Of a stretch of 64,000 nucleotides of DNA, positions 2,060-12,354 are shown one piece after another; positions within the stretch are counted from its first letter, which is position 1, and the number at the start of each line of letters is the position of its first letter. The position numbers and the translations under genes were made by a program. Source of the stretch: Pocillopora damicornis. Taxonomy: Eukaryota. The notes below the pieces were generated by a model. It was not told where the DNA came from, ran no database searches, and was given only the letters and a program-made list of their open reading frames with translations. The stretch covers positions 682,001 to 746,000 of the forward strand of contig NW_020845264.1 of the NCBI RefSeq assembly GCF_003704095.1, given 5' to 3'.

Positions 2060-2412
2060 CACAGGCGGCCCAAGCTCACGTCTCGAGAAAAAGCCAACGA
2101 TGAATTCATGAAATTCAAAAGACATGGATAACAGTGATAGTAAAGCAAGCTTAAAACAGCAGAAATCGCCAGAAACTACGACGGATACACGGGGCATGAG
2201 TAAGTTTTTATTGATTTTACGTGTAAAATATTCATATTTCGAAATATTTATCGTTGTAAATCGACCATATTTCGTTCCCCATACTATTCCTTATAACGTG
2301 TTCAAATTTTCAACGGTTCCTCCCGTAACTTAACACCGAGTCACACAACGCGTGACGCGTTCATGAATTCCTCGTTGGCTTTTTCTCGAGACGTGAGCTT
2401 GGGCCGCCTGTG
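2060..2412. mobile_element. MITE (about 353 bp) with 53-bp terminal inverted repeats and target-site duplication
   Basis: Left cacaggcggcccaagctcacgtctcgagaaaaagccaacgatgaattcatgaa matches the reverse complement of 2360-2412 with 1 mismatch. Flanked on both sides by cttaaag (7 bp), or gcttaaagc (9 bp) if the ends are shifted by 1. Confidence 0.9.
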
Positions 2413-2748
2413 CTTAAAGCGATGTTTGTCGACTGTAATTTAGAACATTGAAAATACAAGTTAGTGATTGCTTGAAACCTATGGAAGATTCAGTGTTTCA
2501 GTTCTCTGTTTCTGATTTTCATTAAGTTAAATCTGGTTTAACTAAACATGTTTTTGCTTGTGTGAATAGGGCCTTAAACTCTAACGCAGTATCATGCAGG
2601 GTTTTTACCTTCCGTGACCTTTGATATCCTATGTACGTCACGCAATCTTAACGTGACGTTACATAACGTCAGACGGACACTGGTAACTACTTCTAGAATA
2701 CTTCCGCTTACAGCAAGTACTGCAGCAACACAAACGATGTGACTGGAG

Positions 2749-5700
2749 ATGGCTTCCTCTGATAAGGTAAACTCTAAGTAGTATCACATCTCAAACCTTG
2801 TGGTTCTTCTTTCTGACAGACAAATGTTTTCTGTGTTTCAGCAATTCCTCCTGACAGGGGCTCAGACCGATGGTAAGTCAGAATTGTTTATTTTACTGAT
2901 TTGATGAATCGTTTTGTGTTGTTACTATTGATTCGTTCCGCAAATGTATACATTCTTGGCCCTTCGAACAAGGCTTAAAAGCATTCCTTTGCGCTTACTT
3001 AGAGCATCTCGTTAACATGTCTAGACTGATAATTCGCTTTTCACGAATAGTTATAGCTTTCCTCCGTTATTTCACACTAGGTTAGGCTAACCCTGCAAAT
3101 ATTCCAGCCACTATATATATTGCAGTTTCATTTTGTCTTTTGCAGTATTGGAATTACTTATGCATGTACGTGGTTTTTGATAGCACACAACATGATTAAA
3201 TCGTTATTGTTTAAAAGCGCTTTAAACTTTTATGAAGATTTGCGACAAATCGATTGGCTCTTTTCTCAAAATAAAACCATTGTTTTCTGTTTGACCCGTT
3301 TTGCTTTCAAAGCAATCAGTTCTTTTAACTCATGCTCTACGTGTGTTTTTCCAATAATTATTTGGTTATTTCACTTTAAAAACTACTCAATGGATATGGA
3401 ATTTCCGGATCAATCCGCCTTTCGTGATTGTGAGTACTGTGTACACTTTGCTGGAGGCGGGAATCATTTATAATTCACGCGCTGAAGGATTTAAAGTTTT
3501 CCATTCATCACGAGTGAAAATGTTGAAAGAAAAGCGTAGTTTATAATCATTGAAAATTTCCGCAAAAAAAGCTTATTCTGTAACTCAGAAACTAACGAAT
3601 GACTAAATGTCTCTCATCTTGAAAAATGTGTGTTGTTTAGGGGGTTCTTCTCGTTCTGTTACGGATTTTTGCGTTGAAAATGTGAGACCATACAATAACC
3701 ATTTACGTTCAAATGTACTTGTGATATTTTATCAACGATAAAAAAATCTCATGTACGACGCAGTGAACTTTTGGAGCCAATTAAAATAAAGAAGTTGCTC
3801 TGGTTAAAAGGAATCCTTGTTTATAAAATTCTAGCAAATCTTGGATAAATGTGAGGCAAAAAATTTGGCTCTTAACCAAATTTATTGTGGTAGGAAGGGA
3901 GTGTCCCTACAAGAGAGCTTTCTTACCACCTGTCAAACTACTGCTATTGTCTTGTGTCACATGGAGTCAATCAGTAGAATGGAATAAGCACTTGAAGTTG
4001 TTTTTACAGTATGTACTGGCTTCAAAAATGTTGTTTCATTCATAAATCTTAAACTGTATAGAGTGTTTTAGTTTAATTGTTGTTCAGTTCTAATTTCAAA
4101 TTGTTGACATTTTAACTTTATTGCATTAAATTTGTTATCAGTGTCCATACTATTGTACTGATGTGTGCTAGAGATTTGAAGTTCTTAAGTTTTAGTCACA
4201 ATATTTTTTTTTGTGCCAGCCTGTTTTCCTGATATTTTTAGCATCCAAATACTACAAGTTACTTGACATCCATGTAAATTCTGATAAATAAGGTCTTTGT
4301 TGTACAGGTGATAACTTAAAGTTTCCTTCTCCCTGTCTAAATAAACAGTGTTTGTCTTATATTCCTTTCATTTTGTAAAATGCACTCCACTCTGTGTATT
4401 TTATGAAGAGTTATTGTCACAGTGAGAGTTCCAGTTTGAAAGAATTGTGTTTGATCTGTTACTCCAAATATATCTTTTATCAACCCTGTTTTTTGAAATC
4501 CTAAGGGGGAGAAGATGGGAGGGGAAGGGATCTCTAGGATGGTATGTTATAAAAGGGACATTTCCAGAGGGGACTGGGATTGAAACCAAGCCAAATGTCC
4601 TTGAAGGTGAGTGATGAATATTTCATCCATGGATAAAAATATAACTTTCTGTATGTTTCAACTCAATGTTGTGTTTAATTTTTCCAGCTTTGTCTAAGGT
4701 GTTTAAGTTTGCTGATGTTGAGGAGACTGGGTATGTTGATGTGGCAACAATCTCAACTCTTGCAGTACAACTGCTGGGAGCTCAGCTCAGTGAAAATGAG
4801 AAAGAAACAATAAACAATAAAGCAGAAAGCAAGGCTGAAAAAGGTGCAACAAAGCATTTTATGGTTTGATTTTACTAGTTGAACAGCTCATTGTGATTAC
4901 AGCTGCCTAAATTAGAGATGAGTTGGAGACGTAGCAACCCTTAGGTTTTAGCTATCCATTTTTACCAGACACCTCAGATTATTAAGGTATCAAGTGCCAG
5001 CCACATGCATCAAGATCACATTGAAAGTGAGAAACTAGCTAAATTATTGTACATGATAAAGGATACTCCATCTTGATTTGAAAACATCTTTTTAATACAC
5101 AGTCATCCTTGTCATTACTTCCTCCATCGTGTTTCTTAATTTTTGTCTTCATTTTAAGAAGAAAAACATGAATCATATTCATTAATGGTTCCAGCTACAT
5201 GCAGAATCATAGTTTTGGCCATGATACTTGTCTGTTTAGAAGAAACATCATTGAACAAAGGATCAATTGTAACAATCATGACTGTTTTCCTGTTTGCTTT
5301 AGGGTTGCTTTCTTATCAGAACTTTATAGAGATCATGATGGAGACAATGCAAGCTATGACACATTGGGGAAAGTTGAAGACAGTTCTAGAAGGTTATGTT
5401 GGATTTGATACAGTGCAGGAGCAAATCCGCAAAAAATCTCTCAAAAGAGGATTTGAATTTAACCTCATGGTTGTTGGTAAGTTTTGTCTTTGCCATTTGT
5501 GGTTTGATTTTTGATACCTTTAATTCTACTTTTCATCAAGAGAATTTAGTTCTAGTGTGACTACTATAAATGAATACAAAATGTTTTACCAGGTCAAGTC
5601 AGTGTATAATACATTTAGCATTAGTTTGATACATGAAAAAAAATTCCTGTCATCTTTTCTTACTTGACATATAGAAGAAGTATTTTTCTTTGAAAAAATT

Positions 5701-8209
5701 ACAAAAATTATTTCCTAATTCAAAGTTATGAAGAACATAAAACCATAAGACTCCTTTCTTGTGTTTTCCAGGTGCAACAGGCCTAGGTAAATCAACCATG
5801 GTGAACACTTTATTTAAAGGAAGATTGAGTAGGATATCTTCCACTGGAGCCACTCCCTGTATTCCCAAGACTGTTGAAGTCAAATCAGTTAGTCATGGTG
5901 TGTTTGGTTTCGTTGCTATCTTATACTTAGCTTTGTTTTTTCTTTGTTATTTTTTTCTTTTTGGGTGAGATATGGTACCTGGAATGTTTATGGCAGCAAT
6001 AACGTAAATCCTTATAAATATCATTATAAGCTTAAATTTTATTTCTTAATTTTCAGTTATTGAGGAAAAAGGAGTCAGATTGAAACTTACCATCACAGAC
6101 ACACCTGGGTTTGGTGATCAGATCAATAATGAAAGTTGGTAAGGCTGTTGTACTGTTCATTACCTAAGTATGGTTTTGTACTTGCACATCATGTACTCTA
6201 ACTCTTATGGCAAATCCTGCCAGTTGGTTGTAAGTATTTGAGCAGCATTTCATGGCATATGTTCAATTTATTTAATCTATGAGATTTTACTCATATTTAC
6301 TCAAACTTGAATCACTTGTATTTAGTGGAGTGGGGAATTCTTTAGACAAAAATGAAGGTAAAAGAGGGAACATTTGAAGGTCTGTTTGATAATGACAATA
6401 GTTATTTCATGTGTTTTTGTATAATGTTGTAACAGCTGGGACCCAATTCTGCAGTACATAAATGAACAGTACAACAAATATTTGAAAGAAGAAACTAGCA
6501 TCAACAGAAAGCCTCGAGTCCCTGACAGCAGAGTTCACTGCTGTCTGTACTTTATTGCACCAACAGGTCACAGGTGGGTTCATGTTAAGAACAGAAAATA
6601 TATCTATTAATTCTCTAACAAATCATCAAAAGTCTTTGTTGTAAGTTACTGGAATACTGAAAAGTTATGGACAGCTTTATATGTAAAAGTTTGACCAAGT
6701 ACTGAAGTGTCTTACTTCCAATTTGCTTTTTGTACATTTAGGTATGGAATGTATGTGAAGTTTCTTTTGCAAATGTTAATAAACACCTTTACATGTACAT
6801 CTGCCATAACAACTGTTTGCAATGCACATCAAGAAAAGCATTCGAGGTGTTAAAAATGAAGTGGCTGGCCTACTGATAGGTGATGTGCATTTGTTCATTC
6901 CAATCAGTGACTTATGTCTTGAAATTTTTACAGGTTGAGGCCTATTGATGTGGAATTCATGAAACGACTAGACAAGTGCGTTAATATTGTGCCAGTGATT
7001 GCAAAGGCAGACACTCTAACTGTTGAAGAACGTGAAGCCTTCAGAAGGAGGGTACAGGCAAACTTATGTGAATTTTCATGTATTTCCTGGTTGATTTAGT
7101 TTTCCATTTTTGGACAACTGGAACTAAAATGAAATTATCACATATGTTCATATTGTAGTTACGGGAGGATATAGAAAAAAACCGCATTAACATCTATCCC
7201 GTTCTTAATCGACATGACCTGGATGAAGAAGAAGCCCGGACAACGTCCAGAATAAGGGTCAGTAAGTAATGGAATTTATTTTCATTGTTACTGTTACACA
7301 ATTAACTTAATACATTGTTAAGTTCTCCAGAAATTGTAATTATCATTAAATGAGATGCAGTGAAATACAACATATGTTATTTGTGGTGTGTTCATAACTT
7401 AATCACTACTTTTACATACATTATTAGACGTGATGCAGATAAAAAAATTTTGTTGAGTTCGTTTTTCGGCTTTTGAGCTACAAAGCCTGAAGGAATAAAT
7501 ACTGATGTAGTTCACATTGCCTGGCAGTGGTCTATCTCAACGTTAGCTTGTTCGCTTTTCAAAACGCTCTGTTTGCGCCATGTCTTTTTAGGATCAGCTG
7601 CCTTTTGCTGTGATTGGTAGCGATCGTTACGTTACTGTGTCAGGAAAGCCAGTTCTTGGAAGGAAGACAAAATGGGGTCTGATCGAAGGTAAGGAGAATT
7701 TGCAGACATTCTGGCTAGTGTTAAAAATGTTTCTGTTATTGTTGTTCATTTTCTAGAGGTAATTTCTTTTATTATTTCTTTTCAGTTGAAAACAAAAACC
7801 ATTGTGAATTTTCTCAGTTACGGGACATGTTAATCAAGTAAGTGAAATTAGTGGACGAGCATAAGCTTTTAGAAGATAACCACCCGGGTCCAGTTTGTCA
7901 CGGTCACGGAAAGAACGTGTGGGGACTACTCAGAGCAACCGAAAGCCAGGATGGTGAATAGCTTAAAATAGAAGACGCTTTTACTTTTGGAGATTTGTAA
8001 TTCTGTAAAAGATTCAACAAACTGATAGGTTTTTTTGTTGTCTTTTTTTCCATAGAACACACATGCAAGATTTAAAGGAGGTCACAGACAACATTCATTA
8101 TGAAAATTATCGCCGCACACATCTGACAGAGGAGAAACATGAGCAAATAGTTTTAGAAAACAATGTGGTGAACATGGATGACGTGATGGGTCAGGAAAGC
8201 AAAATTTAA
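2749..8209 (+). CDS. Septin of the SEPT3/9/12 group with an N-terminal calmodulin-like (two degenerate EF-hand) lobe; 12 coding exons
   Basis: Exons 2749-2766, 2842-2872, 4688-4843, 5303-5476, 5772-5897, 6057-6138, 6436-6573, 6934-7051, 7159-7257, 7592-7688, 7786-7837, 8056-8209. All introns are GT-AG and phase-consistent. Septin motifs: [30 protein letters not shown]-loop [42 protein letters not shown], septin unique element [19 protein letters not shown]...[10 protein letters not shown]. No C-terminal coiled coil, typical of the SEPT3 group. Confidence 0.93.
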
Positions 8210-8694
8210 ATAAAGCATGAAGGATAAGCAGAATAAATTTTTTACTAGAGATTCTCGGTCTTATCAGACTCAGTCAAGAAAGATTCAATACTATGTAAGT
8301 TGTTTGCTACTCCATATATGAACAATTTAGTCTTTGTTACAATTATCAATGTCGAAAATTTACTTCTTTGAAAGTTTTCATGGTGCACTATGTATTGAGA
8401 AACTCCATCGTAAAGGTTTGTTCGAAATGGTGCGGCTAACTTTTCTCCATCCCTATTATATTATGCGTAGGAATTCATTAAGATTTGGAATTCGTATCCT
8501 TTGGCTGCCTGGATTAAAAGAGTTATTGATATCAACAATTTCAAACATTATAAGCTTGTTATGAATAGCAATTTGTTAAAATAAATTAAACTCAAAGTTG
8601 TTTCTTCAATAAAACGTAAGTGACAATACGTAGCCATTGTTGGTGTCAGTGGCCTGGTGTTAAACGGTATACGGGGATGTGAATGGCGTTCCCG

Positions 8695-11310: not shown

Positions 11311-12354
11311 ATGCCTCGTTCATTCACAATTAGGAGACTGCCTGAGCCAAAACGTTCAAACACATCACAAACTGCTGGTAAGGCTTCATTTTACCGAAAT
11401 ATCGTGAGATTTTTCCGACCTTTTCATTGATACAGCATTCTTTAAATTTAAGTGACCGAGAAACGAGGAGGTAACCAATAAATGAAAAGAAAAAAAAGGA
11501 CCCTCTTTATTAGGCTTTGTATGTGGTGTTCCCCAAATAGATACCGAGCTTTAAACGTAATGGAGTATGTGAAACGCTACCAATAATTCGAGTTAAAAAA
11601 GTTCAAAATTCTTCCGAAACATCCTTTGTCCACAAAATAATGAAGTCTATAATGTTCACTGGCAGCTTCGGTTTTGAAGTCGTCCGCCTTTGAAGACCTT
11701 TAGAATACGCTGGTCATGAAACTTTCCTTATCATTTGTAGGAAAGGATAAAAGTGAACGAGAACCAAAAGTCCTGAGATATCCAGATGCAGATAACACAA
11801 CAGTGGGAACTGAAACTAGCCAAGCAGGAAATGACTGGAGTGTTACACAAGAATCAGTAGATAGGAGCCAATTACAGGAGAGTGCAAGGGAATCTGCAGA
11901 GGGTCTCTCCTTTTCCATAGAAAAAATCCTAGCGTGGCCTGCCTCTGAAGCAAAACGTACCACGCGGAAACCTCTTATTAAACAGCCCAGCAATAGGACA
12001 AAGTACCACTGCCCTCACTGCCGAAAAGTCTTTAAAACGAGTTACACTTTTGGAAAACACATGAGAATGCCCGAGCACACGAGTGACAAGCCATTTGCAT
12101 GTCGAACATGTGGTAAAGGTTTTCGTCTCTCCAGTACGCTGTGCAGACACAAGATCATCCATACCAATCAGCGACCCTTCAAATGTCCCGTTTGTGGCAA
12201 AGCCTTCAATCGTCAATCTACACTAAACACACATCACAAAACCCATAAAGGCCTAGTAACGAATGACAACAGTGTCGACCAGCAAAGCTTCGGCTGCGTT
12301 GAAGTCTGGTATATTAATCAAGGTGTTTGGTTAAATCAAGCATCATTGATTTAA
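11311..12354 (+). CDS. Fez/FEZF-like C2H2 zinc-finger repressor (3 fingers) with N-terminal SNAG-like motif and Eh1 motif; 2 exons
   Basis: Exon 1 11311-11377 ([22 protein letters not shown], donor G|gtaagg, phase 1) splices in frame to exon 2 11741-12354 (acceptor tttgtag|GA). Eh1 is LSFSIEKIL. Fingers [21 protein letters not shown] and [21 protein letters not shown] match FEZF fingers 2 and 3. Confidence 0.85.

Follow-up and report, generated by a model that had tools for sequence, protein, structure and literature searches.

The stretch analyzed here, 64,000 nucleotides of Pocillopora damicornis DNA (contig NW_020845264.1, positions 682,001 to 746,000; hereafter the window), contains a septin gene at 2749–8209 on the + strand. 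We hold with high confidence that the product of this gene starts with an EF-hand lobe and that the lobe is fused to the septin. Sequence comparison and structure prediction together left little doubt that residues about 12–86 form one EF-hand pair, like a single lobe of calmodulin, and that the N-terminal extension is not disordered. The best explanation of the whole, which we regard as very probable, is a SEPT3/9/12 orthologue with a folded, optional and ancient lobe that is probably calcium-independent. An EF-hand pair fused in frame to a SEPT3-group septin had been proposed in the first-pass annotation of this DNA, and the sequence, the family statistics, the predicted structure and the RNA were all in agreement with it.

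The gene consists of 12 exons, and the RNA contigs placed GT..AG borders at all eleven introns. The main ATG is at 2749, just 3' of an in-frame TGA (2740–2742), and the septin reading frame therefore cannot extend upstream. The coding sequences of exons 1–4 (2749–2766, 2842–2872, 4688–4843 and 5303–5476) and of exon 5, which starts at 5772, are compatible in phase. The summed exon length of 1245 nt corresponds to 414 codons and a stop.

The public RefSeq protein for the gene is XP_027043484.1 ("neuronal-specific septin-3-like", Pocillopora damicornis, 414 amino acids). In a tblastn comparison it was 100% identical to exons 3, 4, 7, 9, 10 and 11 of the window, and the mismatches in the remaining pieces were produced by the alignment overrunning exon ends. 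The gene, its exons and its protein are already in RefSeq, and the gene model is not new. Exons were searched singly, while every full-length analysis used XP_027043484.1 (label P0051).

The coding part of exon 1 (2749–2766), which follows a 5' untranslated part at 2570–2748 defined by RNA contigs and sequence, encodes residues 1–6 (MASSDK), the N-terminus of XP_027043484.1. Exon 2 (2842–2872) encodes the N-terminal half of helix E1 and supplies the first base of the codon for A17. Exon 3 (4688–4843) covers residues 17–69, comprising the end of helix E1, the EF1 loop (4714–4749), helix F1, a linker, helix E2 and positions 1–5 of the EF2 loop. Exon 4 (5303–5476) covers residues 69–127, from G69 to G127.

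By itself exon 4 runs in one open frame from position 6 (Gly) of the EF2 loop, which ends at 5322, through the Met-rich helix F2 (5314–5355), a linker with the invariant W90-G91 (5365–5370), the septin α0/polybasic helix (about 5395–5457) and GYVGFD, to β1 and the start of the P-loop. The end of the lobe and the start of the septin thus lie within a single exon, and the fusion is independent of any splice. The presence of both the EF2 end and the septin GYVGF in this exon was as first described, and the translations of exons 3 and 4 were identical to the peptide then given for exons 1–4, with exact coordinates. The single-exon frame, the RNA joints and the identical RefSeq protein together bore out the earlier view that the fusion is not an artefact of the gene model.

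The RNA joints came from contigs of four runs (X1, X5, X15 and X16), belonging to four different public coral RNA-seq studies, which were placed on 2300–8290. These are assembled contigs and not raw reads; they establish that the spliced form exists, and give neither its abundance nor its transcription start. The joints between exons 1 and 2 (2766/2842) and between exons 2 and 3 (2872/4688) were found in three of the four studies (X1, X5 and X16). Those between exons 3 and 4 (4843/5303) and exons 4 and 5 (5476/5772), and all seven joints downstream, were found in all four. Contigs retaining an intron were much shallower than the joints in X1, X5 and X16 (for intron 2 in X1, 36 versus 917). The four runs showed no transcript of this coral that starts within exon 4, the counter-case named in the first-pass annotation.

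In X15, one contig joined exons 3–5 and retained intron 2. The gap in depth between this contig and exons 7–12 was considered as a possible sign of an isoform starting downstream, and was rejected: the contig includes the 1.8-kb intron 2, which dilutes its mean depth.

Searched alone against the PDB sequences, exon 3 matched only EF-hand proteins (7/7), including centrin-2 (E 0.014), calmodulin and NCS-1. A profile built from exon-3 fragments gave no gain over the single sequence; its best match was radial spoke protein 7 (E 0.001), followed by calpain EF-hands and centrin. Among 1.84 billion representative proteins, exon 3 reached a nine-fold EF-hand protein at E 7.7e-8. Only two matches in that search were long proteins (P0018 and P0028); all others were short pieces derived from gene calls made without splicing. 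The fragments with 45% identity were located on contigs of 1.4–2.3 kb, which are too short to reach any downstream septin; by their similarity to P0070 and P0073 they probably came from demosponges.

Family profiles pointed in the same direction. Pfam EF-hand_7 (PF13499) matched residues 17–81 of XP_027043484.1 over profile positions 3–67 of 67 (E 0.0034, 18.2 bits against a curated cut-off of 30). The same family matched 25 of the 43 orthologues (E <= 0.05, best 9.3e-7), and EF-hand_1 matched nine. PF13499 was present in the precomputed annotation of three of the best 120 related entries (P0069, P0073 and P0147), and Pfam EH matched weakly to the lobe of P0008, a hydrozoan fragment. In a search with a protein language model, all ten of the best matches that bore a family belonged to EF-hand families.

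AlphaFold modelling of XP_027043484.1 with an alignment of 43 sequences predicted helices at residues 12–25, 35–46, 52–65 and 73–86 and β-strands at 32–34 and 70–72, at a predicted local distance difference test (pLDDT) score of 84–89. The topology, in the full-length and the lobe-only models, was that of two helix-loop-helix units with a small antiparallel β-bridge between the loops (pLDDT 84–92). This was the EF-hand fold for which an AlphaFold check had been suggested. The lobe of a hydrozoan orthologue, modelled alone, reached a mean pLDDT of 87.8, and all 50 of its listed Foldseek matches were EF-hand proteins. The best was the calmodulin N-domain 3uct_A, with a template modelling (TM) score of 0.73, a root-mean-square deviation of 2.2 Å over 69 columns and E 7e-3. 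VIA-align, which is independent of Foldseek, gave Z scores up to 8.1, its leading matches being troponin C, calmodulin-containing entries, CaBP1, the calmodulin-like domain of α-actinin, centrin and a myosin light chain.

The remainder of the protein is a SEPT3/9/12-group septin, as judged by similarities and NCBI names and not by a phylogeny. Pfam Septin (PF00735) matched residues 117–393 of XP_027043484.1 at E 1e-113 (profile positions 1–277 of 280). The best solved relatives were Ciona SEPT9 (9bhw) and human SEPT3, SEPT12 and SEPT9, at 56–62% identity, versus 49–52% for human SEPT7 and 46–48% for SEPT2-group entries (SEPT7 and SEPT2 groups overall, about 42–52%). The α0 part of exon 4 had its best match in a chain titled septin-3 (9bhw_B, E 2.5e-10).

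On the + strand, exon 5 (5772–5897) starts the G domain with the P-loop GATGLGKST. The domain continues in exon 6 (6057–6138, joints 5897/6057 and 6138/6436), exon 7 (6436–6573; Pfam Septin, E 3.8e-18) and exon 8 (6934–7051; Pfam Septin, E 6.4e-14), the last of which contains the AKAD motif. Thus G1 (GATGLGKST) and G4 (AKAD) were present in translations of the window exons; G3 (TDTPGFGD) was present in the 43-sequence consensus, with D183, P185 and G186 invariant. Exon 9 (7159–7257), exon 10 with the septin unique element (7592–7688) and exon 11 (7786–7837) were placed by RNA joints and protein mapping. Exon 12 (8056–8209) encodes the last helix and a short C-terminus without a long coiled-coil, and ends with the stop codon at 8207–8209. 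The protein ends 21 residues past the Pfam Septin match (393 of 414), with a single terminal helix to 398 and then a low-confidence tail; no long C-terminal coiled-coil extension was found in the domain match of XP_027043484.1 or in the full-length model.

Human septin octamers have the order 2-6-7-9-9-7-6-2, in which the SEPT3-group subunit is central and meets its twin through a homotypic N- and C-terminal (NC) interface. By analogy with the human and yeast complexes, the coral subunit would be expected at the octamer center, with a homotypic NC interface.

The distribution of the lobe was read from the best 120 of over 7000 matches. Among the matches listed, a lobe of about 75 residues, a TTxWGxLKT linker and α0 preceded the septin domain in Hydrozoa (Clytia, Hydra), Scyphozoa (Sanderia) and Anthozoa (Nematostella, Actinia, Exaiptasia, Acropora, Montipora, Stylophora, Porites, Oculina, Paramuricea). 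The same arrangement occurred in all four classes of sponges (Amphimedon and Dysidea; Sycon; Oscarella and Corticium; Vazella and Oopsacas) and in the ctenophore Bolinopsis. It was also present in the hemichordate Glandiceps, echinoderms (Lytechinus, Diadema, Apostichopus, Amphiura, Asterias), the cephalochordate amphioxus (Branchiostoma) and chelicerates (spiders, scorpions and ticks). The comparison across Cnidaria and other phyla, of the kind proposed at the outset, extended the lobe–septin fusion well outside the Cnidaria. On the other hand, the lobe and the TTxWG linker were absent from all 45 vertebrate SEPT9, SEPT12 and SEPT3 sequences among the best 120 matches.

Judged from these sequences, the lobe architecture is the common state of SEPT3/9/12-group septins in the non-vertebrate animals among the matches listed, specific neither to corals nor to Cnidaria, and the module is, by the same comparison, ancient in animals. 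Within the coral genome the lobe is single-copy, and four other septin loci matched only the α0 part of exon 4.

The identity of the lobe to that of the coral was 59–91% within Cnidaria, where the G domain gave similar values, and 25–43% between phyla, with the length unchanged. In 43 sequences from 7 phyla, F22, D26, G31, G47, F76 and M80 were nearly invariant, and W90 and G91 were invariant. The start of α0 was [ILVM]Q in 53 of 56 lobe-bearing sequences and [IV]L in every one of the 45 vertebrate proteins from the best 120 matches. This correlation between the α0 start and the lobe is only a lead, as it is essentially one clade contrast with ctenophores as a counter-example.

Calcium binding was considered from the loops. 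In the EF1 loop of the coral, Asp1, Glu3, Thr5, Gly6, Val8 and Asp9 are acceptable, and position 12 is Thr. In the EF2 loop (SKAEKGLLSYQN), Ser, Ala and Lys at positions 1, 3 and 5 provide no ligands, and position 12 is Asn. Neither loop matched the canonical EF-hand pattern (PROSITE PS00018). The Thr at position 12 of EF1 and the degenerate EF2 had been noted before and were both seen in the loop alignment. The pattern also failed in 42 of the 43 orthologues, the sole match being the glass sponge Vazella (DPDENGVIELEDL, P0147). The best structural matches were apo, Mg2+-bound or trapped-intermediate calmodulin N-domains (TM 0.63–0.73). The Ca2+-saturated N-domain 3b32 scored TM 0.45, which is a weak hint, for the model was without most of helix F2. 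We therefore favor, as the likelier interpretation, a calcium-independent binding module, in line with the initial suspicion, given the degeneracy of the loops in the coral and in all but one of the orthologues.

The alternative is that the lobe is a working Ca2+/Mg2+ sensor, in which the ion would open the pair, the pair would grip or release α0, and assembly at the central NC interface would be calcium-dependent. In this family EF1 almost always has Asp at position 1 and Gly at position 6, its positions 3 and 9 are mostly acidic, and position 12 of EF2 remains Asp or Glu in many non-cnidarian members. The EF1 loop of the glass-sponge member is, moreover, canonical, and this member is matched by Pfam EF-hand_1, so the ancestor may have bound calcium. 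The substitutions in both coral loops, the failure of the PROSITE pattern in the other 42 orthologues and, weakly, the preference for N-domains that are not calcium-saturated nevertheless made a sensor in the coral unlikely.

For the calcium-independent module, the simplest mode of action would be the binding of a helix, such as α0, or of a partner. The α0/polybasic helix of septins takes part in the NC interface and in membrane binding, and the Met-rich end of the lobe (helix F2) is located about 15 residues before it. The lobe would most likely serve as a Met-rich, helix-binding module at the central NC interface, clamping an amphipathic basic helix in the manner of a light chain. The helix would be α0 itself, in cis, or that of the neighboring subunit, in trans; alternatively, the lobe might recruit a partner. 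In this way the lobe would modulate how the NC interface closes or how α0 is exposed, and so tune assembly or membrane binding. That the lobe acts directly on α0 we nonetheless consider doubtful.

By eye, α0 resembled an IQ motif ([FILV]Qxxx[RK]Gxxx[RK]xx[FILVWY]), with Lys replacing Gly. Pfam IQ (PF00612) gave no match on XP_027043484.1 at E <= 0.05, and the IQ-like α0 as the target of the lobe is only a lead. Prediction of a complex between the lobe (8–88) and the linker with α0 (92–125) gave a score of 0.01, which weighs neither way.

A different role for a folded lobe would be that of a passive spacer, or of a dimerization knob that steadies the homotypic NC contact, without peptide binding or regulation. 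EF-hand pairs often dimerize, two lobes would sit side by side at the central NC interface, and no partner was identified in this analysis. Against this, the Met-rich F2 and the conserved hydrophobic core positions resemble those of target-binding lobes, and the alternative first exons and short isoforms (see below) suggest a switchable function. Neither point is decisive; we judged such a purely structural role to be rather improbable.

Several points weigh against the calcium-independent helix-binding module, or against the fold assignment on which it is built. With 18.2 bits, the coral protein falls short of the curated cut-off for EF-hand_7. The matches to PDB sequences are of borderline significance (E 0.014, and at best E 0.001 with the profile), and the Foldseek E-values reach only 7e-3 for a 76-residue model of the hydrozoan orthologue without most of helix F2. 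The full-length model gave the linker and α0 (residues 101–120) a pLDDT of 59–69, and the placement of the lobe relative to the septin is therefore not fixed by the model. Non-canonical EF-hands sometimes still bind Ca2+ or Mg2+. The fold was assigned because the lines of sequence and structure, individually modest, agreed with one another.

That the lobe is optional was suggested by the isoforms. An alternative first coding exon, designated 1b, is located in intron 2 at 3390–3429 on the + strand; it encodes 13 residues followed by a T, after which comes a GTGAGT donor in matching phase. Joined to exon 3, it would read ...RDS-LSKVF and replace the first 16 residues, which include the N-terminal half of helix E1. 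The exon 1b N-terminus is annotated in isoform X2 of Oculina, isoform X3 of Montipora and isoform X1 of Pocillopora verrucosa. No exon 1b joint was seen in the four RNA runs. As read from these sequences, the coding part of the coral gene can start with either of two exons (1a or 1b), and the lobe is an optional module.

Short isoforms of about 325–344 amino acids, starting at a Met equivalent to M80/M81 just after the lobe, are annotated in hemichordates (Ptychodera, Saccoglossus), echinoderms (Diadema, Asterias), spiders (Argiope) and ticks, and coexist with the lobe-bearing form.

One further sequence bore on the reading frame. The hydrozoan fragment P0008 is located on a metatranscriptome cDNA contig, L009, with a septin frame immediately after it, and a search with the septin part of L009 found XP_027043484.1. 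The lobe and septin frames of L009 are offset at a run of five T (L009:270–300) where six T would keep the frame, and L009 is the only contig with that exact sequence. The shift is probably a homopolymer error, because the Clytia and Hydra sequences are in frame.

These short isoforms, the offset frames of L009 and the lack of an exon 1–2 or 2–3 joint in X15 could be taken to mean that the upstream exons are outside the main protein, with translation from Met80/Met81 or transcripts starting downstream, and the lobe a minor product or an untranslated upstream frame. This is extremely improbable, for the coral lobe and septin share exon 4 in one open frame, the exon 1-2-3-4 joints occurred in three independent studies at depths similar to the downstream joints, the in-frame, constant-length lobe of 7 phyla with a cnidarian identity equal to that of the G domain would be unexpected for an untranslated region, and the L009 shift is best read as an error.

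The region 5' of the gene showed several other features. A minimal upstream open reading frame (ATG-TGA, 2737–2742) lies 7 nt before the main start, with its TGA in frame with the septin ATG. Just 5' of exon 1, at 2052–2420, there is an element like a miniature inverted-repeat transposable element (MITE). It has 61-nt terminal inverted repeats (2052–2112 and 2360–2420), with 97% complementarity and 247 nt between them. At 2300–2499 the RNA contigs were very deep, with many differing loose ends around 2316–2418, which suggests a repeated, transcribed family.

The MITE-like element contains an upstream non-coding exon, whose last position, 2199, is followed by a GTAAGT donor; the splice leads to the AG acceptor at 2568–2569. 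Loose contig ends before 2570 in X1 and X5 matched 2170–2199 of the window, showing that some transcripts use this exon. An ATG at 2124 within it would open an upstream frame of 27 codons, with its TAA just past the splice. Farther 5' of the element, a (GACA)n/(GA)n simple repeat occupies 1900–1950 after a T-run. At 11704–12351, the next + strand gene downstream of the septin shows C2H2 zinc fingers (HCPHCRKVF...) in a long open frame.

Compared with known systems, the coral protein resembles vertebrate SEPT3, SEPT12 and SEPT9 in its G domain and septin unique element (56–62% identical to the solved human G domains), in the shared α0/polybasic helix and in having no long C-terminal coiled coil. 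It differs from them at the N-terminus, which is short in vertebrate SEPT3 and SEPT12 and long, basic and disordered in SEPT9. The vertebrate α0 starts with [IV]L and not [ILVM]Q, and the EF-hand pair and TTxWG linker are absent (45/45 among the best 120).

With the calmodulin N-lobe, centrin and troponin C, the coral lobe shares, as predicted, four helices, two loops and a short β-bridge, and with calmodulin-type lobes the conserved Phe, Asp1, Gly6, linker Gly and Met-rich last helix. Unlike in calmodulin, centrin and troponin C, there is one lobe only, joined covalently to a GTPase, and its loops are without the full canonical set of ligands. The EF-hand modules of cytoskeletal proteins (α-actinin, spectrin, ACF7/plakin and the myosin essential light chain) offer another likeness, with structural matches to 2n8z (Z 7.3), 8iah, 5ve9, 2os8 and 6yet. 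In several modules of this calcium-insensitive group, to which EH domains also belong, degenerate EF-hands clamp, without calcium, a neighboring helix of their own or of a partner protein. No sequence-level membership of the coral lobe in the α-actinin, spectrin, plakin, light-chain or EH modules was found, however.

One evolutionary scenario combines these points. In the ancestral animal septin, the lobe would have been at the central NC interface, docked on the IQ-like α0 of its own or of a neighboring SEPT3-type subunit. There it would have gated the pairing of the tetramer halves or the exposure of the membrane helix, originally in response to calcium, and vertebrates would have replaced this switch with the SEPT9 system of N-terminal isoforms. 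We offer it as a long shot.

The textbook view is that the N-terminal extensions of septins are variable and largely disordered. The present analysis points to a folded EF-hand pair immediately ahead of the α0/polybasic helix, with a conservation that spans animals as distant as ctenophores, sponges and amphioxus. In the searchable literature, which leaves subscription journals outside, there was no mention of an EF-hand in any septin; the combination of septin and EF-hand gave only STIM or unrelated proteins. EF-hand and calmodulin are also unmentioned in four papers on septin evolution (PMC11238149, PMC6323724, PMC8801916 and PMC13081904). The reading of this N-terminal extension as an EF-hand domain thus appears to be undescribed in the literature searched.

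Dozens of entries named "neuronal-specific septin-3-like" carry no EF-hand family in the precomputed Pfam annotation. Drosophila and C. elegans are not known to have the SEPT3-type septin group. With the group not known from these two, and the lobe missing from the vertebrate sequences examined, the module would have been hidden in the main model organisms. It provides a testable handle on how early animals may have regulated the central interface of the septin octamer, and on how that regulation would have been lost or replaced in vertebrates.

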